This document shows, one piece after another, positions 49,036-64,000 of a stretch of DNA of 64,000 nucleotides. Each line of letters starts with the position of its first letter. Positions within the stretch are counted from its first letter, which is position 1. The DNA is from Dimorphilus gyrociliatus (taxonomy: Eukaryota; Animalia; Annelida), in contig CAJFCJ010000010.1 in assembly GCA_904063045.1 (NCBI GenBank), positions 930,001-994,000 on the forward strand, in the 5' to 3' direction. The position numbers and the translations under genes were made by a program. Below the pieces are notes generated by a model. It was given only the letters and a program-made list of their open reading frames with translations, was not told the origin of the DNA and did not search any database.

Positions 49036-52000
49036 ATGAAAGCATTTGTGAACATTTTATTTATATTCTCTATTAGTACACTAACACTCTGCGGTAAGCT
49101 TTTTTATAGTTGATGATACTTTTAAGGACAATTGATTGAAATATAGGTTCTACTTGTCAAAGAGATGAGGATTGCTCATACAATGGATTATGCATTGTTG
49201 GAAAGTGCAGCTGCAGCTATCCATTGAATGGAACAATTTGCAACTATGGTAATTAATAAAATAAGTATTCTATCTTATGTAATTAAGTTATTCATGGACA
49301 ACTCAAGGAACCAAGATAAAATTCTATTTTCAACAACAAAGTTATGGTTCATCAATAGGATCAGAAATTCCAGTTAAAAACACTTCGGAATGCTTTGAAA
49401 TTTGTCTCTCTATAGATATATGTGTTGGATTTTTCCTCTACTATAATAATAATATAAATCATATGAAGTGCTTTTTGAAAAGTCAAATTAACTATCCATT
49501 AACTTTTCATAGCAATGAGGATATAATTACTGTTATTTTAACTGGTAATAGAATTAACACAAAGCATTTACCTTCTTAAGCGTATACCATTTTATTTTCA
49601 TTATCTTATAATTAGATAAAAAGCTTGGAATTTGTGGTAGTGAAACAATCTATACTGAACATCATTTAGAATGTTTAGAATTTCTATGGAAAAAGCATGG
49701 ATGCTCTAATTTTGGATTAAAATTTTCTGAAAATCTACCAAAATGGATGTCTAACATGACTACAAAAGAAATTGAAGACGATATGATAAATGTTCTGTTA
49801 CCACCAACCTTTTACATAAATACAAATGTTCAACCTAATAATTCAAGATGGTATCGTTACAGCTGCTTTGGACCTGGTTCAAAGGGTCATTACAACATAG
49901 CAGCTTTTAAAGATACTATAGTATCGAATCTTATTTCTCAAGACGATTTGTATCATCATTCTCATGTCGTTGATGGAACTTCACTTAGCGATATTAATTT
50001 AGGGAGTTGTACCAGAATGCCGTCTTCTAACCCTTGGATTGCCATTGATTTAAGAGAAATATACGATATAAGAACGATTGAAATCATTCCACCGAATTGC
50101 TGCAGTAATATTATCAAATAGCTTATCAATATTTATATATATACTGTATATTAATAATTACTATTAACTCGTTCAATTTCCGTTAAAGGTCAAAATCAAA
50201 CTATTAGCGTCTACGCCTTTAGTACAGATAAATTTGTACTCAACGATACAGTATATGAAAACGAAATTTGCGATTATGATATTGATTTATTAACTGGATA
50301 TGAGAGAAGAGTTATTGAATGTTTACCAAACTTAAAAGGGGGACGTTTCGTTAAAATTCAAGAAGAATCAAACAATAGCTTAACGTTATGCGAAATTTAT
50401 ATATATACAAGTAATATAATTTAATCATATTTAATCTTTGAGAAACAGATATTCTCTCCTTTATCCATATAGGCGATCTAGCTTTAGGTCAACCTTCATA
50501 CTCTTCGAGCTCTCTCGATGAAACATCCTACCCTGGTGCAGCTGTTAGTGAATATTATAAATTGGGAGAATGCTTTGTTTCCATTGTGGAAGAAAGTCAT
50601 CAATGGTTATCTGTTTATTTAGGTGGATTCTATCTTATTAGAAGTGCCGCTCTACTAACAAAAAGTTTGCATGACTTGGAAATTTTTCTAACAAGACAAC
50701 ATCCTGGTCTATTTTGGCCTCCTTTAGAGAGAGTTCTATGCAATAAACTAAAGAATATATCTGAAACTAATTTTCCATACATGGTTATTTGTTTAGAGGA
50801 AGCGACTGGTGAATTTATAGTTGTTTATAGTTTAAAGGACTTGCATGTTTGTCAACTACAAGTTTGGGGTGAGAAGTTAACTAAATCAGGTTTAGTATGA
50901 TTTTTAATAACAGTTTAGCCTTATATTTTAGTATTTTAACGATTTTATTATAATTTTATTGATATGTCTTTTAGGAGAGAATACAAAAAATATTGCCTTG
51001 CATAGACCAGTAGCGCTATCTAGCGTACATGACCAGAAATATTCTCTGAGCTACTTTGCAACGGATGGATTATCTGATTCAAATATGGCAGCTACTGCTC
51101 AAGAAGATAATCCATGGATAAGCGTTGATCTCTTGAGGGTTTATTCCGTTAAAAATATAGGTATACTTATTAGGGCGGCAAAATCGGGTGAGGAATGGTT
51201 TTTGCATAAATCTATTACTTTATGACATTTATCATAAATCATTTGCGAAGCAGTTCTAGGAAGATATCGAAGAATAAGAGGTCACGTTGGAATTGATATA
51301 ATAAATTATGAAAACGTCTCTATTAATGGAAACTGTTTTATTGAAAATGGAACAGATAGCAAAACCATCCTAAAAGGCTCATACAAATTTTGGAACTGTT
51401 CTAATGAAGGCCAAAGGGGTAGATTCGTTACAATACAATCACTTGACCAATCAGCAATACTTCATATTAATGAACTAGAAGTGTATGGAAGTGTTGATTT
51501 AGTGTACGATTTTCAAAGAATCAAATTTATAAATTGTGAAATAGAGGCTATAGATGATTCTTCGGCAGAAGTTCCGTCAAATCAAAAGTTTCCTATCAAA
51601 ATAATTGATGATATTTTTATTCCATATAGCTTTATCAATCCAATTATTTCCTACATAATAATAAAACATTCTTACGAAAGCAGTATAATTATTTATTTCG
51701 ATGATTTATATTTAGTAAAACAAATTGGCGTTCAACCACTGTATAATCTAAGCACTGGTGAGAATAGATATAAAATTTCTCTATTGATTATTAGATTATT
51801 AAAATGTTACCGGCAGTAAGCGTATTCCTGGAATAAGTGATGAGTTAATGTTTGCAAACTGTACTAGTTTTTTATTTGTAATTATAAAAGATTCTTTATT
51901 AGGTGCGAAAATAAATTCACTTATTACCTAGGTATTAGGTATATTGCCTGGTTCTTTCATTTATTGCTATTGCTACATTTTACTTATATATTTAATGTTT

Positions 52001-52665
52001 TTAAGAAAAATTCAACAACTTTACCGTAAACGTTGAAAGAATTGGTAGAAAGCAAAGGAAATTTTGCAGTTTCTTTTATACGAATAAGACACACCTCTAT
52101 TCTTTAGAGTATTTCAATTGTCCAAACAAAACTTACGGAAATCTCCTTTCTATTTATAGAAGTGACTCGGTCAATTCATTGGTCATAAGTGAGATAATTG
52201 CATTGGGTTTAAAACATGACAATCCTATTGGTAAGCATTCTGTCGTTCTATTTACTATCTATAATATGTAATACTGTTCTACTTCTCAGTTCCCCAGGTT
52301 AACGGGTGTAAGTAGTTCTATGGAAAATTATTTTTAATATTTATGCAATCAATAAAGATTTATTTTTACTAATCCAAGCTCTCTGGATGATATATGGAAC
52401 CAGATGGAAATTACTGAGACGTCTTATTGAACATACATTTTTAAACGTTTCAACTTTAAGAGAATGTTCATCAAGATGCTTAAAAGAAAATTGCGGAAGT
52501 TATTCTTATAGTTTTCAAATTAAAGTTTGTTTATTATCTAAATATGAAATAAATGGAATTGAAGATAAGGATGCTGTTGTTGTTAAAAGTAGACTTTATG
52601 TGACATTTACATATCTAGATGACGAAATTAACAATAAATATTGTTCGTTGAACGCTGTTACTTAA
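49036..52665 (+). CDS. Secreted mosaic protein copy A: EGF-PAN-Cys module-4x F-type-lectin/F5-8C-like-PAN, about 916 aa, 11 exons
   Basis: Exons 49036-49093, 49147-49248, 49308-49544, 49616-50104, 50189-50410, 50473-50868, 50975-51187, 51254-51757, 52006-52230, 52290-52307, 52379-52665 (2751 nt, open). Motifs CQRDEDCSYNGLC, ECFEICLSIDICVGF, ECLEFLWKKHGC, NIAAFK/NIALHRP, PWIAIDL/PWISVDL, LTLCEI, ECSSRCLKENCGSYSY. Confidence 0.8.
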
Positions 52666-53156
52666 TTTAAGAATACACAATTAAATGATTTTATATCTTA
52701 TCTGATTTTATTTCACTTATATTATCAGTTTAAAATCAATCAAATAACTATATTTTTGTTATTAACTATTATAATATCTTCTTTAAGAAAGACGATGGAG
52801 AGGTCTTTCAAGGTTGAACAACATTTTATTTTGAGATGCATAATATATACATAAATTTATACATTTACATAAATCATGAATATTCACCTTGAACTACTTT
52901 CTACAAAGGAAAAGAAATAATAAAGAATAAATCATAAAGTAGCTATTTTTAAAGACACGTGTAAGGATTTATTGGCATAAGCGTATTTTCTTTTTATCTT
53001 AGGGGCGTTTCTCCTTCTTTGATTGTATATATAAGTTTAGTATAAATTGTATTTGTTATTGGTACACTTTTGAAAAAATCACAAGTATTTCATCAATTTA
53101 ATTGGATTATCAAGAAAAGACGGAAAAGAAATAAATAACAAATAACTCGAGCAATT

Positions 53157-55251
53157 ATGGATTCAGATATTGCTCCTCTTATTGATGAGGAACATAATAG
53201 AAATATGTCTAATCCAGGCACTGATTCTAACAACCGGCTGTCTGTTAGGAGAAAATTGAACGCCCTCGGGATATTAGTAACGGAAATGTGCGAGCGAATG
53301 ACGTTTTACAGGTTATTAACCTCTAACGTAGCTTGCTCTCTTAAACAATAGTGTATAAGGTTAAAACTTCTATTTTAGTATATCGGGAAATATTGTAATA
53401 TTTTGTCAAAATATGCTGAAATTTTCATCAGCAACTGCTGCAACCATAAATGGGGCATTCATAGGTTAAGAAAAATCATATATTTTATCATTTTCTCTAG
53501 TAGTTTAATAGCTATATATTTACAATTAGGAACATGTTATTTTAGCCCAATTCTGGGAGGAGCCATCGCAGATTCGTACGCTGGTAAATTCAATACTATA
53601 CTTGGGGCGAGTTTTATATATTTCATCGGTAGGATGATCTTAATTATTCAAGTATTCTTTTAAGACGTTTAAACTTGATTTGAAGGTACATTAATTCTAC
53701 CGTTAATTTCTTTGGATTATCAACATTTTAATTCGTCTTATTTTTTATCTCTGGTATGTTAAATCTTCTATTTTAAATGCCTAGTTTTCTATTAATTAAT
53801 AAGAATTTTCCAACAGACTTTTCGAAGGGTACTTTTCTTTTTTTCAATAGTGTTCGTAGCAATAGGTACAGGAGGTATTAAGGCAAACGTTGGACCTTTT
53901 GGCGCCGACCAAGTTAAAGAGGGAGGTTCAAAAGCAGTTGAAGTATTCTTCTTCTGGTTTTATTGGTTCATCAACTGCGGAACAATATTTTCTTTTACTG
54001 TGGTAGTTTATTTACAACAAAACGTTAGTTTTGCAATTGGATACGCAGTACCTTCAGCAGGAATGTTGATTGCAATCAAAATATTTTTAGCTAAACGAAA
54101 CCACTACGAACATCCAAAAATTCAAGGTTTTCACAAAAATTAAGAAACAAAAAAACTTAAATCAGCTTTTCACATTATAACTGAAACAATAACCTTCGTT
54201 TAGGGAGTGTACTGAAAAAAATGTTTGGTGTAGGCTTTTATCTTCTACGAAATTGTAGGAAAAGAGGAATAAATGATGCTAAAACATGCTTTGATAAGGC
54301 AAAAATAAATTTCGGAGGACCATATTCTAATGAAGATGTTACTAATTTTAAATTACTTTTAAAAGTTATTCCAATATTCTTATTTACAATTATTTATTGG
54401 ACTTTAAATACACAGGTACTCTTCTTGTATTCTAATTTATTTTTCATACTTTACATTGTGCTTTATATATCTAGTCGGGATCATATTTTGTTATTCAAGG
54501 AGAGCGTTTGAGAGTTAAGGTTAACTCTTTTACTATACCAGTTGCTTCGTTGAATATCTTCAATTCTGTTTGTATTATGCTTTTTATTCCCTTGATGGAT
54601 AGGGTAATTTATCCTTTAATGGATAAATTTGGTAAAAAGCCCACACAACTACAGAGATTAGGATTTGGAATGATTGTAATAACAACAAGCTTTCTTATAA
54701 GTGGAGGTTTAGAGATTGTTAGAAAGAAAGATATAGAGAAGAATGGTGTCATTCAACAAGTTATCGGTGATAAAACTTACAATGCATCACACGTTACCAT
54801 TCTCGGGCAAATACCTCAATTTGCTCTAACTGGAGCTAGTGAAGTGTTCACAAGTATTACCAGTTTGGAATTTGCATATTCTCAAGCACCAAAATCGCTG
54901 AAAAGTGTAATAATGGGAATAAACTTGATGATGACTGGTTTAGGTAGTTATTTGGGATCTCTTCTTATAAATGTAATAAAAAAAGCAACGGCAAATGGTA
55001 AATATTGATTTTTTTCTAGAAATTATTACATATAGTAAACTATTAAACTATTAATTACCTAATTAGATCCATGGTTACCGGATGATATTAATAAGGGAAA
55101 ACTGGAATATTTTTTCTTTTTGTTAGCTGGCTTAATGGCCTTAAATTTCCTAATATTCATACCAGTTTCAAAATCGTATCAATACGTGACAAAAGAGACA
55201 GATGAACTAGGAGAAGACAATGCAGAGGAGGAACATAAAAATGAGAATTAG
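53157..55251 (+). CDS. SLC15/POT-family proton-coupled oligopeptide transporter (SLC15A3/A4-like), 8 exons
   Basis: EMCERMTFYS (ExxER motif), SPILGGAIADSYAGKF, GTGGIKANVGPFGADQ, FFFWFYWFINCG, QIPQFALTGASEVFTSITSLEFAYSQAPKSLKS, NKGKLEYFFFLLAGL; N-terminal DIAPLI ([DE]xxxL[LI]) sorting motif; stop TAG 55249-55251. Confidence 0.92.
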
Positions 55252-56148
55252 TTAATCTATTTATATAAAACTATATTTAAATCAAAAACTACAAACGTTT
55301 CATTATAATGAAAATGTTAAAAAATTGATTTATGATTAATATACAACATATTTTATTTATATATATATATAAATATTTTCAATGCGATGTATATAAACAT
55401 TGAACTTGTTAAAAGAGACTAGTGATCTTGCTTATGAATGAGTTATTTCCACGAAGAAAGTAATTGATTGACAAAATCTATATTGATTGTAAATCAATAT
55501 TAAATCAATTATCGATTGCAAAGAGTATTTATGCTTATTGAACAAAATTTTCCTGTATTGAACACCATATTCATTCAATATAGCGATTTCTTACAAAACA
55601 TCCGACAATTTCTTTTATTAATTAATTCAAAAAATATTTTAAAATGTCAATGAATAATTTAATTATTCAACAATTCAAATGATTTAACAGACATCAAACG
55701 TCTCCGATTAAAGAAAATAAATTAAAGATTGAATATTTATGACGTACTTATTTTGAAGAACGATTTGCTGTAGTATATTAGAATATTCTGTTTGTAAATG
55801 GAAAAAGGTTTATAGCAATAGTCTTCTAGGTCAGGAATACATTAAGAAGTAGTGTTCTGTTTTTTAATTCATCGAACTATATTTTCATTGGCTGCTATTA
55901 TTTTAAACATGTAGCGCCCTCAGCTACCTTTCAAAATGTAGTTGCACATTAATACACTTATTCACATGATTAGATGAATTTGGAATTTATTTATTGGTAC
56001 TATTCTACTACTGTTCAGCATCTGCATTTGAATATTAAACCTTCAAGGTATATACTGCACTGGCCTAAATCATTTGAAGATATATTGCATTAAACTATTT
56101 ATAAATAAGTTCTTCATTGGATTCAAAGCTGCAAACATTAAAGAAATT

Positions 56149-59100
56149 ATGAAAATATCTAAAATTACTTTGTGGTTGCTTTTTAAAATTTCTTTATATA
56201 TTGAAAGTATTATTAACAATTTTTTATTTGTATTGTAATGTTCTATCATTTATGTCTATTTCTCTAGATGAAGCAGGAAATTGTGATCATATTTGTAGTC
56301 TGTTTTCGAGTTGTCAAGTTATACCTGGACTTTGCATGTGTAATGACAAATATGAAGAATTTTTTTGCAGCCATAGTAAGTATATTATAATAGTTGAAAA
56401 AAGAAAGCATTCCCAAGTATATCTTTCTTTTATAGGTAGATTTGCTAAAATTCTATTTCGACACGATAGTTCAGGAAATGATCTTGGTAGTTTCGAACAG
56501 GTTAATACCTTAGAAGAAGGTTTTGATTTGTGCAGAAATGAGCCTTCGTGTGTAGGATACTCAATTAGAAGAGAGCTTTTTGGCAGTTATAAAATCTGGT
56601 TGAAATATAAAATTATTTATCCTGTTCTTGGATCAACCGACGACATGGCGTCAGTTGCCATGTTAGGTGTTTATATACTTTTTTCATAGAACATAGCACA
56701 TAATTAGAAGGTGAAATAATTATTTTTAGATAAAAAACTGGGAATATGCGGAGACCCTTTTGCAACCGTACAACATGAACCAGAATGTATAGATTTATTA
56801 TGGAAAAATGTCGGTTGTAAAATCGGAACGGAAGCTTACTTGAACAATATAAATGATTGGAAAGGTGTTAAAAGAAGTTATGATATAGAGAATGAGATGC
56901 AAGTATTTAGTGAAAATTCAACACATTATTCATTACCATCATCTTGGGATTCAAGAAAAAGCGTCAGAGAAATGTGTTTTGGTGAACTATCACCTTCTAC
57001 GAAAAATATTGCAATTTATAAAATTGTTACATCTTCGCCTGTTTCTGAAAATGAACTCTTCCATCCCAATCATATTGTTGACGGTGTTGAAATGCAAGAT
57101 CCACTTTTGGGTGGATGCGCCCTACTTGAAGGAAAGCAGCCGTGGATATATATAGATTTATTGATACCTCATAAAATAAGACAAGTAACTCTTATCCCGC
57201 CGTCTTGCTGCTGTATGTAGATACATAATAAAAGTAGAGTTTTAATAAAATTTTGAATAAACATAGGTGATGATCAAATGGTGGATTTAAATTTAAAGCT
57301 TAAGCCACCGTCCGTCATTAATTCGGTATTTTATTATGAAATTTGTGAGCAGAATGTCTCTTTAACGACTGGAGAAAAGCTTAAAACAATTTTATGCAAA
57401 CCTCATATCAATCCTGGACAATATTTTAGTGTTTATTCAAATATTAACAAACACTTGGCAATTTGTGAAATTAAATTATTTACAGGTAAAAAATTTATAA
57501 CTGTAAAATATGAATACTTAATTAATCATTTTCAAAATAAAGATGACCTACTATTAAATAAAGAAGCGTTCTCCTCAAGCTATCATACGCCCAGTAGTAT
57601 GGCTTTCAATGCTGTAAGCGAATTTCTTACAGATTTCTACTTTCAGTCTGTTCCCTCACAGCATCAATGGTTCGGAGTTGATATGGAAAATGTTTATTAC
57701 GTTTACGGGGTAGATTTAAGTAAAAAAAACGCTCCGAATGCAAAATTTAACAATCTAAATATCTATTTAACAATTCAACATCCAAGTACTAATTGGACAA
57801 GTATTACTAAAAAATTATGTAATACTTTTATTACATCTGATTTTACAAAGAATTGGTATACTGTTTTATGTGAAAATAAAGAAACTTTCGGCAGATTTTT
57901 AGTTCTCGAAAAGAGAGATAGTGAATCGCTACAACTATATAAAATATCTGCATGGGGAATTCTTAAAAGTAGAATTACTGAAGATGATTACAGTATTAAT
58001 AAATTGAATTTTCAAAATCAACAGTTAATAGAGTATATCTTTATTATATTTTAGCCTTCAAAAATATTGCTTATAACAAACCGGTAAAAGCGTCCAGCAT
58101 GCTTGAAGATAACCTTGAAGGCTATGTTCCCTATGCGTATGCAGCTACTGATGGGATATTAAATTTTTTTATGTGTCACACAAATAATATTAAAGGTTGG
58201 GTTCAAATAGATCTACTTGGTGAATACAAAGTAAATTACATAGGAATGCTAACAAGAAGATACTGTAAGTTTAAAAAATTACTATTTTTATCAATTGTGC
58301 TTTTAATTAATTATCTAACTATAGATGCATATGTATATGCTAATATTAGGGGCTATTTGACAAATGTAAGCTTAACAACCGATCAAGCTATACCATTTAT
58401 CATACCCAATTGCTTTGATAATTCGGATGGAACTCACATCAGTGTTATTGCCGGAGAAATGAAATTCTGGAAATGTAAAGTTCCCGAACCTTTTGCTAGG
58501 TACACTGTATTATATAATTTAGGAACACAACCAGTAAAAGCACACGAAATTCAAGTTTTCGGTTATCCACTCAATCATTCAAGTATTTTCAAAAGATTGG
58601 AATTTATGTCAGCAAATTCAAATCATATGGGTAGTGCAAAAAAATATAAGACTATTTCAAATATTTTACCTGTAAAGGCTATTGATAAAAAGTTGCCACC
58701 AGCTTTTCAAAAATTCATGGCTAGTTGTACATCTGCAAGGGAAACTGGAATGCCTTCAAGAATAACTGTATTTTTGAACGCTACTCATATCATAGATGAA
58801 ATCATAGTACTTCCTTGTTTTGACTTACATGACGGTAATAGAAATTTATTGGATATAAATTAATAACAAATCACTATTTATAATAGAAATTTTAGAAAAT
58901 ATTGAATCATATGTTGAATATAGCAGGAACTTTAAATATCAAAAATGTGATATAATAGTTGGTGACAATAGTACATTACTTATTCCAACATATTTTCAAT
59001 GCCCACCGAAAACGGAAGGCGACCGAATATCAGTGTACAGAAATGATTCAAAAAGCTTAAGTATATCTGAGATTATAGCTTTTGGTGTTCCATCAGCTAA

Positions 59101-59546
59101 GAATTTAGGTTGGTTTTAATTGCTTTTGTTATTTAATAAGAATATTTGTATTATTCTACAACAGAAGCGGCTAATGAACAAGGTGAATAGATATGAAAAA
59201 ATAAAGATTTATAAGTCTATTATCTAAAATATATTAGTTGATCTATTTTTCATTTATTATAATAGAGAGTTGGAGATTTCTGAAGGAAGGATATAAGCTA
59301 CAATCAACGATTACTTATAGAACAATACAGGAATCTCTATCGATTTTAGATTGTTGGAAAGAGTGTAATAAAGAAAATTGTAAAGCCTTTTCCTATTCAA
59401 AACTGTTGAGTGAATGTATTGTTTCTAAGGAAAAATTGATGAAAGGCTTTACAATGGGTAAAATTGAACCGAGCAATCAAGAATTCGCAACATTTATCTT
59501 AACAGGATGTACGATTAACTGCGGACAAGACATCAACTGTTTTTAA
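56149..59546 (+). CDS. Secreted mosaic protein copy B (EGF-PAN-Cys-4x F-type-lectin-like-PAN), about 918 aa, 11 exons
   Basis: Exons 56149-56206, 56268-56375, 56436-56666, 56730-57212, 57267-57485, 57543-57968, 58055-58264, 58325-58834, 58896-59108, 59165-59182, 59266-59546 (2757 nt, open). Same motifs and intron positions as copy A. Confidence 0.8.
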
Positions 59547-59909
59547 TTATTTTGCTATGGTATTATTAAGTGAAAAACTCTTCTTTTACTTCAAAAGCAG
59601 ATTTATATATTTATTATAGTAAATAAACAATCAAATTGAAAATGTACCTGTTTTTTCATTTATCAATAGAAATATTCTATGAGTTAGTCATAATGGTTTA
59701 GAAATTGGTAACGAACCTAAATATTTACATTGATTTTAGCTTTTCCAAGTCTTATCTTTTTCAAATTCAAATGAAAAGTTGATTTATCGATTCTCTTCTC
59801 AAAGTATAGCCATTAGTGTAGAGGTCTCTTCATTCTTGAAATTAGTAACCTCCTGATCAAATATAATTTTAGAATCAGGATTTTCTAAAAGACAAGAAAG
59901 AATTGAAAA

Positions 59910-62900
59910 ATGAAAAGACTGAAGATAAAGATGATGATTTTCAAAAGTTGTTTTATTCTTTTAATATTCTCTATAGTGGCTTGTAAGTTAATGAATTATT
60001 CATTAAGCATTATAAACAGTGAATATTATTTTAAAAGGTTCTGCATGCCAGAGTGACGATGATTGTATTGCTAATGGATATTGTCAAGAAGGAAACTGTC
60101 ATTGTAATACATTATATAAGGGTTCCCTCTGTAACGAAGGTGAGGAGGAAACAAAAGACAATCAGAAATTTTTTTTACGATACTTTCGACGTTTTTATTT
60201 CAGGTAGAAGCATCAAGATCTATGATAATTACGTTTCTGAAGACTATCCTCTCACGCAGGAGCCTTTTATAATTTCTACTTATTCAGCATGTTATGATGC
60301 TTGCTTAAATAATACGAAATGCGTTGGATTTGTTTCTATGTTTTATACATCACAATTTCATTGTTCAATGCAGGAAATAATTTCCTATCCAATGATTTAC
60401 CGTTCACCGAAAGCATCAAAGAATTATACAACTATGATTCTGAAAAGTAATTTACCAGTTTTCATTTAATTTTCCTATCATAGCTTATTCACTTTGTCAT
60501 GTTGTTTTGTTTTGTTTTAGACAGCGAATACGGCGTTTGTGGATTAGGTAATATTACAGCAAGACACTCAGAAGAATGTATTGAATATTTATGGGAGAAA
60601 ACTGGTTGCGTAAAGAATAGTTTTTATTTTTTAGCAAAGTTATCCTTTTGGATAACAAATCTTAAAATCGACAATATAAAATATGAAATGAAATTTATAA
60701 GAAAAAATTCAGTACATATTAGCTACTCTCAAGCATTTAATGAACAGAATGAATGGTATAGAGTTATGTGCTTTGACCATATTTCTCCATCAATTTTTAA
60801 TATAGCGCTGTATAAAACCGTTGTTGTATATACATCCAACGAAACTGAGAATTCTGAACTTTACCATTATTCTCATATTGTTGATGGCGTTACAGAATCT
60901 AATCCATTGCTAGGCGGCTGTTCAAAGGCAACTTTTTGGATAGGAGTTGATTTACTTCAAGATTACTTCATTATTACAGTAGCAATTTATGCACCTACCT
61001 GTTGTTTGTATATTGAAATGTTTTAAAAGAGATATATGAGCTAATAACAATTTATCCATTCCTATAAAAAATATAGGTTCGACTCAAATTGTTGATATTA
61101 CTATTAACAAAAATCATATTCAAAATATAACTAAAAGACAGGAAAATCTTTGTATGGAGAATGTTTTACTTAATTCATCAAGTAGTAAGACAATGGTAAA
61201 TTGCTTGTTAACCGTAAGTTCCGGAAGATATGTTATTCTTAGTAATGCTCTTACAACATCTATGATAACTATCTGCGAAATAGAAGTATTCACAAGTAAA
61301 TTATTCTATTACTCTAATAAATATTTTGTATTGTATTTATTAAAAAAATTAGGTAATATATTATATAAACAACAACAAGTATATTCATCTGGAGTTTCGA
61401 AAACCTATTTTTCACCAAATTACGCTCTTAAAGAGAGGGTTTCTACTGGCTATTGTTTTGTTGCATCTTACTCAAGTACATCTTATGGTTGGATTACAAT
61501 AGATCTTCAAAACATATATCTCATATATGGAATTGATATTTTATCTCTTATTAACACTAGCCACCATATTGATATTATCTTGTCTAACAATAACAAAACT
61601 TCAGAAGGAAATTTTGAAAATGGAATAATATGCGGTAATGAAACTAATTTTATAGCAGACTATTACTCTACATTCTTCTGTAATATTAACAATTCTACTG
61701 GTAAATATATTTCTATAATAAAGAAAGAACTTGGTAAATTATCTATTTGCCAACTTGAAATGTGGGGTTTACTTATTGGAGAGAACAGTTTGTTAAATTA
61801 AGTCCAAAATTAAACAATTACTATGTAAAAATTATTTTTATAGATGAAAGTGCAGTAAATATCGCTTATAATAAACCTGTTTGGCAGTCGTCTCTAAAAC
61901 AAAATTCTCTCATTTATGCTCCCTACTTTGCTACTGATGGATCTAGTGGAATATATTTTGCAAAAACCTTGAAAATTAAATATTCTTGGTTGCTTGTTGA
62001 CCTTCTATCCCAGTATAAAGTATTGTGTATGTCTATCTTGATTCATCCTAGAGAAACATGTAATAAATATATATCAATGACTTTTGACATTTTTTCTATA
62101 TCATTGATCATTGTAGATTTGGGTCTATATAATAATATTCATGGTCATATTACTAGAAAACTATTATATATTCCTCTTAATTCATCCCTTTTACTGGCCT
62201 CCATGGTGGGAAATTGCTTTGAAACTAATTCAACAGAATCAGAAAGTCTGATTAGAGGAAAATTGAAGTTTTGGTACTGTAAGAATCCTAATCCGATCGG
62301 TCGCTTTTCATTACTATATACATCTCTTGACCAAAGTTTAACAATACCTGAATTGGAAATTTATGGAACTCCTGAATTTGATGCATATAGCGTTATAAAT
62401 ACAAGGACAGCTTTTATGAATTCAATTGATACAATTAGCACAGATTATCCAAATTATAAAAAATATGGCGTAAAAGCGGTAGACGGTTTTACATGTCCCA
62501 TAACGAATAACGTTATAATTCCTGGTTCAAGTTGCGCTATGGGCGTTGATGTAAAAGAGATAAAACTAACGGTGATTTTATCAAAGGTTTACTTAATTAA
62601 AGAGATAGTTGTTATTTTACCTATGAACAAATTAAGTATGTGTACAATAATTTTGCTGTCCTACTGAACTAAAGACTCTTTTCCATAGGAAGCGATTCAT
62701 TCAATAACGTATTTATATCTGCCGATCAAACAGCTGATCTAATCACCAGAAAACTTTGTAACTTTTATAAGAAAAATTATGAAAAAAATGTAACTTCATT
62801 ACCAATATATATTCATTGCTTGGGTGAATTATACGGCGATCAAGTTTCTTTCTATCGATCCGATGGTTTTAATAGATTAGAGATTTGCGAAATATTTGTG

Positions 62901-63332
62901 CTCGGTCGTAAAGCAAATTTTCCAGGTATTAATTATTAAAATATTAGTAATTTCATTCATATTTCTCATTTCACTAGCTGAAAATTTAGTTGATCGATTT
63001 GGTAAGTAAAATAGTACTTTGGTGAATTATAAAACTTAAATTAACCTTTATTACTAGTAAATGTATGGAGAATGGTTGAAAAAGGAGCAAGAATAGCTGA
63101 ATTATTAGTGTCAAATATCAAATTGAAAACAAAATCTATAACCGAATGTTCAAAATTTTGCTCAAAGACATTCTGTAATACTTTTACTTATTCATTTTTT
63201 AGTGAAAGTTGTCTTGTTTCTAATTATACTTTATCTCCCAAGACAAATAGTAGTACCATATTTATGTATAAAAATAGTGCATCCATTACAATGTCGAGTA
63301 TAAAATCGGTAATTAATCAGACATGCTACTAA
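59910..63332 (+). CDS. Secreted mosaic protein copy C (EGF-PAN-Cys-4x F-type-lectin-like-PAN), about 934 aa, 11 exons
   Basis: Exons 59910-59982, 60038-60139, 60204-60446, 60521-61003, 61077-61295, 61353-61766, 61844-62059, 62117-62635, 62689-62925, 62978-63001, 63058-63332 (2805 nt, open). The exon 4 donor (gtttgt) is weak. Confidence 0.78.
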
Positions 63333-63808
63333 TATATTAGGCCTATTAAGACCAACTTTCATTTAATGTTAAATATTTTTATTGATGGATTCTTGCAATA
63401 CAGATTAAAGAAACAATTTCATGTTTAAGCGTTCAATATTTGAAATTATTTTCATCTTCTTCGACGAGATATTATTAACAATAAACATTAGTAACTGTAT
63501 ATTATTGTGAGAAGATTTACAAAGAGAAAAGCATTAATTGAATCGATATTGAAGAGAAAAGGTGATAAAGATTTATTAAAAATATTGAACATTTTCTTTA
63601 TAATTTCCTTATTGACATTACATTTCGTGAAACGAGTACTTTAGAGACGTTTCAAAAAAAGGCTTTAAATGTAACATTTATGATATTGTTTTTCAAATGT
63701 TACCTTCTTTATGTAGAAAATAATTAATATATTGCTTATTCAAAATCACACTATTTATTGCCGAGGAGCGTTTAACCATACACTTCCAATGAGATTTACT
63801 GTTGAACG

Positions 63809-64000
63809 ATGCAATATTTTTATATATTCATCACTTCAATAACTATTCAAAATATTGAATTATCATGTAAGATTTTATTCATTTAACATAATAATTCTCA
63901 GTGGAGTCTAAAGTCTATAAATCACATATATAGCTGGCGTATGTCTAACTAATGACGACTGCTCTGAGGGATTTTGTATTGATGGAACTTGTACTTCTTG
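63809..64000 (+). CDS. Start of a probable copy D of the same family (signal exon plus EGF exon), runs off the window
   Basis: MQYFYIFITSITIQNIELS|gtaaga (phase 1), then an exon from 63934 encoding SGVCLTNDDCSEGFCIDGTC, matching the CxxDxDC EGF exon of copies A and C. Confidence 0.6.

Follow-up and report, generated by a model that had tools for sequence, protein, structure and literature searches.

The far end of a 64-kb stretch of the Dimorphilus gyrociliatus genome (contig C10, positions 930001-994000; hereafter the window) holds a row of genes whose products join EGF-like, PAN and F-type-lectin-like modules, which raises the question of what these proteins are and whether they amount to a recognition system of their own. 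The original prediction, made by a model from the bases, had presented them as a candidate undescribed recognition system composed of secreted and diversifying proteins. Our analysis indicated that three complete genes (c1, c2, and c3) and the start of a fourth (c4) are part of a five-gene array, and that they belong to a family of secreted binders with a recognition-type role, a reading to which we assign a probability of roughly 0.6. The structural and evolutionary description of the family can be given with high confidence. Judged by its sequences, the family is lineage-specific and made of known modules in an unnamed arrangement rather than a new system.

Structure and layout of the array

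Probing the window with pieces of c2 (tblastn) recovered three intact paralogues on the forward strand, encoding proteins of 916 (c1), 929 (c2), and 941 (c3) amino acids, and no further copy in the region upstream of c1. The gene models were produced with a splice-aware script and then curated against the paralogue alignment and the deposited models. They confirmed the predicted set of three intact paralogues of about 920 amino acids with a common 11-exon structure, together with the start of a fourth gene at an ATG in position 63809; the predicted start of the tract, 49036, coincides to the base with the start codon (ATG) of c1. Exon sizes nearly match across c1-c3, including a micro-exon of 18-24 nt ahead of the last exon, and all 30 introns are of the GT-AG type and in phase 1. 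Intron lengths of 37-248 nt, mostly 52-84 nt, agree with the median intron of 66 bp in this species (PMC7854359). One boundary is uncertain: at the exon 6 donor of c1, the public protein P0002 (486 amino acids), which is a fragment of c1, splices 33 nt further downstream. Because the exons are all phase 1-1, exon shuffling followed by duplication of the whole gene would appear to have produced it.

The array continues into the next 9 kb of contig C10, past the window end, where c4 is completed and a fifth copy (c5) follows, both as approximate models, and this contig carries the exon-4 signature exactly five times. Amino acid identity between copies is low, as had been predicted, with pairwise values of 27-31% among c1-c3 and 23-31% among c1-c5. 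The public record presents these genes differently: the deposited protein CAD5119518.1 (P0001, DgyrCDS8120, partial, 2843 amino acids) is a wrong fusion of c2, c3, c4, and c5 (C10:986149-1000929) that has no signal exon and omits 46 residues of the second lectin-like domain of c2. Going by the sequence, c2-c5 are separate genes that were wrongly merged in the deposited annotation. We found no paper in the literature citing DgyrCDS identifiers, and the accessible part of the genome paper's supplements makes no mention of lectins or of an array gene (PMC7854359).

Four domains derived from F-type lectins

The order of modules in each protein is a signal peptide, an EGF-like module, a PAN module, a module with four cysteines (4-Cys module), four jelly-roll domains derived from F-type lectins (A-D), a micro-exon linker and a second PAN module. 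The architecture that had been read from the bases is therefore real. In the c1 protein, domain A spans residues 226-370, B 371-502, C 507-652, and D 684-808. Exon 5 encodes the second half of A, exon 6 the complete domain B, exon 7 with the first half of exon 8 domain C, and the second half of exon 8 with exon 9 domain D.

Profile searches against the PDB tied the first three domains to F-type lectins. The domain A profile (exon-4 positions 97-162) matched only 3CQO (3e-9), 1K12 (3e-5), and 2J1R (0.07); the domain B profile gave full-domain matches to 3CQO (2e-5) and 1K12 (2e-4); and the domain C profile matched 3CQO (1e-8) and 2J1R (4e-3). The exon 8 profile, which covers the C-terminal half of C and the N-terminal half of D, retrieved nothing significant in the PDB. 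Comparison of the repeats with one another by hhalign linked five of the six pairs (A-B, A-C, and B-C at 98%, A-D at 95%, and B-D at 94%). Domain D is tied to the F-type lectins through its hhalign matches to A and B only, together with Pfam matches above the cut-off in the paralogues P0007 and P0013.

The predicted fold pointed in the same direction. The AlphaFold2 model of c1 exon 6 (domain B), built from an alignment of 22 paralogous exon sequences, reached a predicted local distance difference test (pLDDT) score of 90.3. Among the matches listed by Foldseek, 1K12 and 3CQO had the highest template modeling (TM) score, 0.82, with a root mean square deviation of 2.5-2.6, and CBM32 chitosan-binding modules stood first by E-value, with a TM-score of 0.79. 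For the whole-protein model of P0007, the best PDB structure match was the tandem F-type lectin 3CQO. The fold of the window domains rests on the c1 domain B model, the other domains being covered via the P0007 model.

Discoidin-type domains, including neuropilin b1b2, the C1C2 domains of factor V/VIII and bacterial CBM32, share the superfold of the worm domains, and Foldseek also ranked tandem b1b2/C1C2 pairs high. The matches to PF00754 and PF22633 were weak, and in the PDB searches the profiles of domains A-C favoured F-type lectins over discoidins by several orders of magnitude. Homology and fold place the four domains among the F-type lectin domains, A-C by profile and B by model, and in this respect the predicted lectin identity was upheld.

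The closest known counterparts are the tandem F-type lectins, such as AAA (1K12), MsaFBP32 (3CQO) and the Xenopus fucolectins, which resemble the predicted c1-c3 proteins in their homologous jelly-rolls, tandem arrangement and secretion. The Pfam scores differ, staying below 28 bits per piece in c1-c3, where tandem F-type lectins of other animals reach roughly 55-60 bits for each domain. A HMMER search of 1.84 billion proteins yielded four matches to the lectin half alone that we looked up, from Xenopus (named fucolectin), Dallia, Tiliqua, and Saccoglossus. The nine nearest relatives of the lectin half that were scanned, one of them from Saccoglossus, were plain chains of three to eight F-type lectin domains, in which neither PAN nor EGF nor any further kind of extracellular domain was detected at E <=1e-4. 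In c1-c3, by contrast, the lectin half is flanked by EGF, two PAN, and 4-Cys modules. The frequent partners of eukaryotic F-type lectin domains are CTL, pentraxin, CCP, transmembrane, and FA58C, a list that does not include EGF, PAN, or the 4-Cys module (PMC5712786). The position of the splitting intron also differs, lying just after the Cys-Cys site in domains A, C, and D of c1-c3 and at the turn corresponding to Glu123-Cys124 of AAA in MsaFBP32 (PMC5712786).

Loss of the fucose-binding motif

Fucose binding by F-type lectins depends on the motif HX24RXDX4(R/K), that is His52, Arg79, and Arg86 of AAA, and deviations from it imply altered specificity or lost sugar binding (PMC5712786). A relaxed form of the motif (H.{22,28}R.[DE].{4}[RK]) was found in none of the 20 domains of c1-c5, nor in the paralogues P0007, P0013, and P0044. 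As positive controls, the Xenopus, Dallia, and Tiliqua proteins gave 10, 7, and 5 matches, respectively. The canonical motif is present in these three vertebrate proteins and absent from the Saccoglossus protein. In HMMER alignments to 1K12 and 3CQO, the position of His52 was occupied by K, R, or L and that of Arg79 by a gap or Pro. Since no domain carries the fucose motif, glycan recognition is not to be assumed from the family name, and in this respect the original prediction was not supported.

Two other hallmarks of F-type lectins, a contiguous Cys-Cys pair and the h2DGx cation motif (PMC5712786), are retained in part. The Cys-Cys pair aligned to Cys82-Cys83 occurs in domain A of c1-c4 and is absent from domain A of c5 and from domains B-D. 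Domain A carries the cation motif as VVDG or IVDG in c1-c3, and domain C carries it as ATDG in c1, c2, c3, and c5; in domains B and D the motif is missing or degenerate.

Flanking modules and predicted secretion

The 4-Cys module is about 85 residues long and is marked by four invariant cysteines in the pattern CxG ... H..EC...LW...GC ... C. Its profile (exon-4 positions 1-90) had no match in Pfam or the PDB, and a protein-atlas search with the module yielded no usable match either. In the whole-protein model of P0007 (DgyrCDS3191, a full-length paralogue; pLDDT 71), the corresponding stretch folds into four or five helices, the pLDDT being about 77-92 in the first two-thirds and lower beyond, and the module is accordingly predicted to be helical. 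Tandem copies of the module occur in an uncharacterised protein of Ciona intestinalis (P0059), and a similar repeat is present in a green-alga protein (P0082) from a metagenome-assembled genome assigned to Monoraphidium.

The stretch of the P0007 model that matches exon 3 has a sheet-plus-helix topology. For the C-terminal PAN profile, the top PDB matches were apple domains, which were not significant (E 0.07-0.3). The Pfam scores of both PAN modules and of the EGF-like module are given in Table 1. At two cysteine columns of the exon-3 PAN module, c1 has Cys at both and c2 has Gly and Ile; c3 has Cys at the first and probably also at the second, where it is shifted by an alignment gap. Exon 3 of c2 thus looks like a case in which the two partners of one disulfide may have been lost together.

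A Kyte-Doolittle scan with a 19-residue span, a heuristic measure, revealed no hydrophobic segment of at least 1.5 in c1-c3 beyond the N-terminal signal-like stretches and beta-core motifs, and the C-termini were hydrophilic. In keeping with the original prediction, which had noted neither a transmembrane segment nor a glycosylphosphatidylinositol tail, we infer that the c1-c3 proteins are secreted, with no membrane anchor indicated.

The window itself is AT-rich, with about 29% GC. The array is broken up by an unrelated POT/PTR2 (SLC15-type) peptide transporter gene that lies between c1 and c2, and an F5/8-type domain match with 28% identity to P0105 lies downstream of c5.

Table 1. Coordinates of the array genes, their modules and neighbouring features, counted from the first base of the window; positions beyond 64000 are extended coordinates on contig C10.
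Feature	Position	Strand	Basis or remark
Gene c1, 11 exons, 916 aa	49036..52665	+	Introns GT-AG, phase 1; exon junctions 3-5 same as in public fragment P0002
c1 exons 1-11	49036-49093, 49147-49248, 49308-49544, 49616-50104, 50189-50410, 50473-50868, 50975-51187, 51254-51757, 52006-52230, 52290-52307, 52379-52665	+	Lengths (nt) 58/102/237/489/222/396/213/504/225/18/287
c1-c3 exon 1, hydrophobic leader		+	Hydropathy scan
c1 exon 2, EGF-like, 6 Cys	49147..49248	+	PF23106 EGF_Teneurin E 8.6e-5, 23.0 bits (cut-off 24.3)
c1 exon 3, PAN/apple-like	49308..49544	+	PF00024 PAN_1 E 1.6e-3, 18.7 bits (cut-off 21.4); PAN_4 E 0.012
c1 exon 4, 4-Cys module and N-terminal half of domain A	49616..50104	+	Exon-4 alignment and PDB profile matches
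c1 4-Cys module	49618-49860	+	
c1 exons 5-9, rest of A, B (exon 6), C (exons 7-8), D (exons 8-9)	50189..52230	+	hhalign; AlphaFold2 model of exon 6
c1 exons 10-11, 18-nt micro-exon and C-terminal PAN	52290..52665	+	PAN_1 E 8.5e-6, 26.0 bits (above 21.4)
Peptide transporter gene, POT/PTR2	53139-55248	+	Exon pieces match PF00854 (E 2e-31 and 6e-40)
Gene c2, 11 exons, 929 aa	56149..59546	+	9 of 10 junctions as in deposited model P0001, both micro-exon sides included
c2 exons 1-11	56149-56206, 56268-56375, 56436-56666, 56730-57212, 57267-57485, 57543-57992, 58055-58264, 58325-58834, 58887-59108, 59165-59182, 59266-59546	+	Lengths (nt) 58/108/231/483/219/450/210/510/222/18/281
c2 exon 2, EGF-like, 6 Cys	56268..56375	+	Cys pattern and alignment to exon 2 of c1 and c3 only
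c2 exon 3, PAN-like, one cysteine pair fewer	56436..56666	+	PAN_4 E 1.7e-3
c2 exon 4, 4-Cys module and N-terminal half of domain A	56730..57212	+	Exon-4 alignment and PDB profile matches
c2 4-Cys module	56732-56971	+	
c2 exons 5-9, C-terminal half of A, B, C, D	57267..59108	+	PF00754 and PF22633 matches below cut-off; PDB profiles
c2 exons 10-11, 18-nt micro-exon and C-terminal PAN	59165..59546	+	PAN_1 E 3.9e-5, 23.9 bits (above 21.4); micro-exon peptide also in P0001
Gene c3, 11 exons, 941 aa	59910..63332	+	8 of 10 junctions as in deposited model P0001
c3 exons 1-11	59910-59982, 60020-60139, 60204-60446, 60521-61003, 61077-61295, 61353-61787, 61844-62059, 62117-62635, 62689-62907, 62978-63001, 63058-63332	+	Lengths (nt) 73/120/243/483/219/435/216/519/219/24/275
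c3 exon 2, EGF-like, 6 Cys	60020..60139	+	EGF_TEN E 1.7e-5; EGF_Teneurin E 5.9e-4, 20.3 bits (cut-off 24.3)
c3 exon 3, PAN-like	60204..60446	+	PAN_4 E 2.2e-4 and PAN_2 E 0.013, both under cut-off
c3 exon 4, 4-Cys module and N-terminal half of domain A	60521..61003	+	Exon-4 alignment and PDB profile matches
c3 4-Cys module	60523-60765	+	
c3 exons 5-9, C-terminal half of A, B, C, D	61077..62907	+	Alignment, PDB profiles, hhalign
c3 exons 10-11, 24-nt micro-exon and C-terminal PAN	62978..63332	+	PAN_1 E 3.9e-4, 20.7 bits (slightly below 21.4)
Start of gene c4	63809..64000	+	Signal exon 63809-63866, EGF exon from 63934; rest outside window
Gene c4, 11 exons, about 943 aa	63809 to near 67256		Approximate model
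Gene c5	about 67449-70929		Approximate model
F5/8-type domain match	72448-72822		About C10:1002448-1002822

Size, age and selection in the family

Counts across the 77.9-Mb D. gyrociliatus assembly gave 57 matches to the exon-4 profile and 60 to that of exon 6 (domain B), with about 43 places holding both in the right order; 5 of the 57 exon-4 matches carry stops. The predicted lineage expansion is borne out by these match counts. Two of the loci, L025 (C54:53819-57133) and L026 (C117:42970-46284), are 99.7% identical over 3.3 kb and are probably haplotigs, for which reason the family counts from the assembly are slightly inflated.

All 13 named proteins with the full exon-4 signature that were looked up came from D. 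gyrociliatus, and 11 more were exon-sized fragments from Logan. The Logan fragment P0004, which comes from another species and is not encoded in this genome, has 53% identity to exon 4 of c2 and 32-39% to the remaining copies. P0003, also from another species, grouped with c1 (support 100/99; 56% identity), and the Logan fragment P0012 was closest to c3 (35%). These three share one reported longest contig of 20,616 bases, and together they suggest that the order of the array may be conserved (syntenic) in another species.

In the phylogenetic tree, the window copies were not resolved as a clade, and the median terminal branch was 0.87 substitutions per site; the exon-4 row of c4 stood in a wrong frame (12 stops), and neither the placement of c4 nor the drawn root carries meaning. 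For both c1 and c2 a nearer counterpart exists in another species. As judged from these sequences, the neighbours in the window are old duplicates, not recent ones. Because the copies are anciently diverged (23-31% protein identity), the synonymous rate (dS) between the window copies is saturated. The sole recent pair found, L018 (C130:8164-11571) and L019 (C63:55645-59052), has 86% DNA identity and a ratio of nonsynonymous to synonymous rates (dN/dS) of 0.63 over 644 codons, with one piece of open reading frame at 1.49, and intron read-through may inflate the value. This pair evolves fast, yet its ratio is below 1 and gives no evidence for positive selection. Given the ancient divergence of the copies, the lack of a window clade and the ratio of the only recent pair, the predicted label of a diversifying family was not supported.

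Possible roles of the proteins

Soluble, multivalent binding is the most likely activity of the proteins. The four sandwiches derived from F-type lectins would provide up to four different binding surfaces, and with the canonical His-Arg-Arg fucose pocket unused, these surfaces may be directed at different glycans or at ligands that are not sugars. Through their terminal PAN modules the proteins could be attached to glycoprotein or polysaccharide partners, or to one another. The most likely role would be to recognise or agglutinate foreign surfaces, with a separate specificity for every old paralogue. Recognition of foreign surfaces is favoured by the high diversity of the family and by the genome paper, according to which the few families expanded in this worm consist mainly of immune-type genes that were duplicated locally (PMC7854359). 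An immune-type role in particular is a tentative proposal, possible and somewhat short of an even chance.

Several points weigh against a family of secreted, recognition-type binders. The genome paper leaves the expanded families unnamed, making the link to immunity indirect (PMC7854359). The absence of the fucose motif from all 20 domains of c1-c5 makes lectin activity itself uncertain. The EGF and N-terminal PAN assignments are Pfam matches below the cut-off, and the profiles of the N-terminal and C-terminal PAN modules had no significant hhalign match to each other. Finally, the leader of c2 is weakly hydrophobic.

The best-placed alternative, though an unlikely one, is that the proteins are structural or adhesive matrix parts, for example of mucus, cuticle, adhesive-gland secretion or egg cocoon, whose lectin-like and PAN modules would tie together glycoproteins made by the worm itself instead of recognising anything foreign. 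PAN modules at both ends would suit such cross-linking, and the persistence of old paralogues, at least two of them with counterparts in another species, fits a stable housekeeping function as well as it fits immunity. Against this, c1-c3 contain no mucin-like Ser/Thr-rich or other low-complexity stretches, and about 43 loci at 23-31% identity show a diversity beyond what would usually be required of a structural protein.

It is improbable that the proteins act in gamete recognition or in the egg coat in analogy to oyster sperm bindin, which has one to five F-type lectin repeats, evolves fast and includes isoforms without the basic triad (PMC5712786). The likeness would lie in several F-type lectin repeats, loss of the triad and strong diversification, and the dN/dS of the recent pair L018/L019 might be read in the same way. 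Oyster bindin, however, diversifies a small number of genes by selection, splicing and recombination, whereas the worm family consists of about 43 separate, anciently diverged loci, and bindin has no PAN, EGF, or 4-Cys module.

Canonical fucose binding is still less probable. Domains A-C are homologous to fucose-binding lectins, domain B shares their fold, and some domains still have a Cys-Cys pair or a cation motif. Nevertheless, the motif had no match in c1-c5 and three paralogues compared with 5-10 in each of the three vertebrate controls, and the residues opposite His52 and Arg79 are replaced or missing in the alignment to 1K12 and 3CQO. That the genes lack a function, being duplicates in decay or artefacts of annotation, as the fused (P0001) and fragmentary (P0002) deposited models and the stops in a few exon-4 matches (5 of 57) might indicate, is very improbable given frames open over 11 exons in c1-c3, splice phases and cysteines conserved despite about 70% divergence, and counterparts of c1 and c2 in another species at 53-56% identity.

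A further extension of the binder interpretation is speculative and, in our estimation, a long shot: the roughly 43 loci could constitute a dinophilid-specific germline repertoire of soluble receptors in which the F-type lectin scaffold, its fucose triad lost and its pockets replaced, was re-tooled for many non-fucose ligands, with a specificity for each paralogue. Such a repertoire would be a diversified recognition family of an invertebrate, with a logic comparable to that of the snail FREPs or the amphioxus VCBPs.

Significance

Multi-domain F-type lectins and lineage-specific expansions of lectins are well known, and our findings do not overturn current ideas. To call the family an undescribed recognition system was too strong, as it is made of known extracellular modules and was already public in the form of unnamed, mis-fused predictions. 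The analysis brought to light the merging of four genes in the deposited CAD5119518.1 as well as a 4-Cys module that has no Pfam name. The family also represents an annelid case of a large and old expansion of proteins that appear to be secreted and of the recognition type, in a genome that is otherwise noted for having lost genes (PMC7854359). If ligand binding proves true, the worm would hold about 43 divergent F-type lectin scaffolds without the canonical fucose triad, which may offer a clue to how specificity changes in this fold and could serve as a source of binders.

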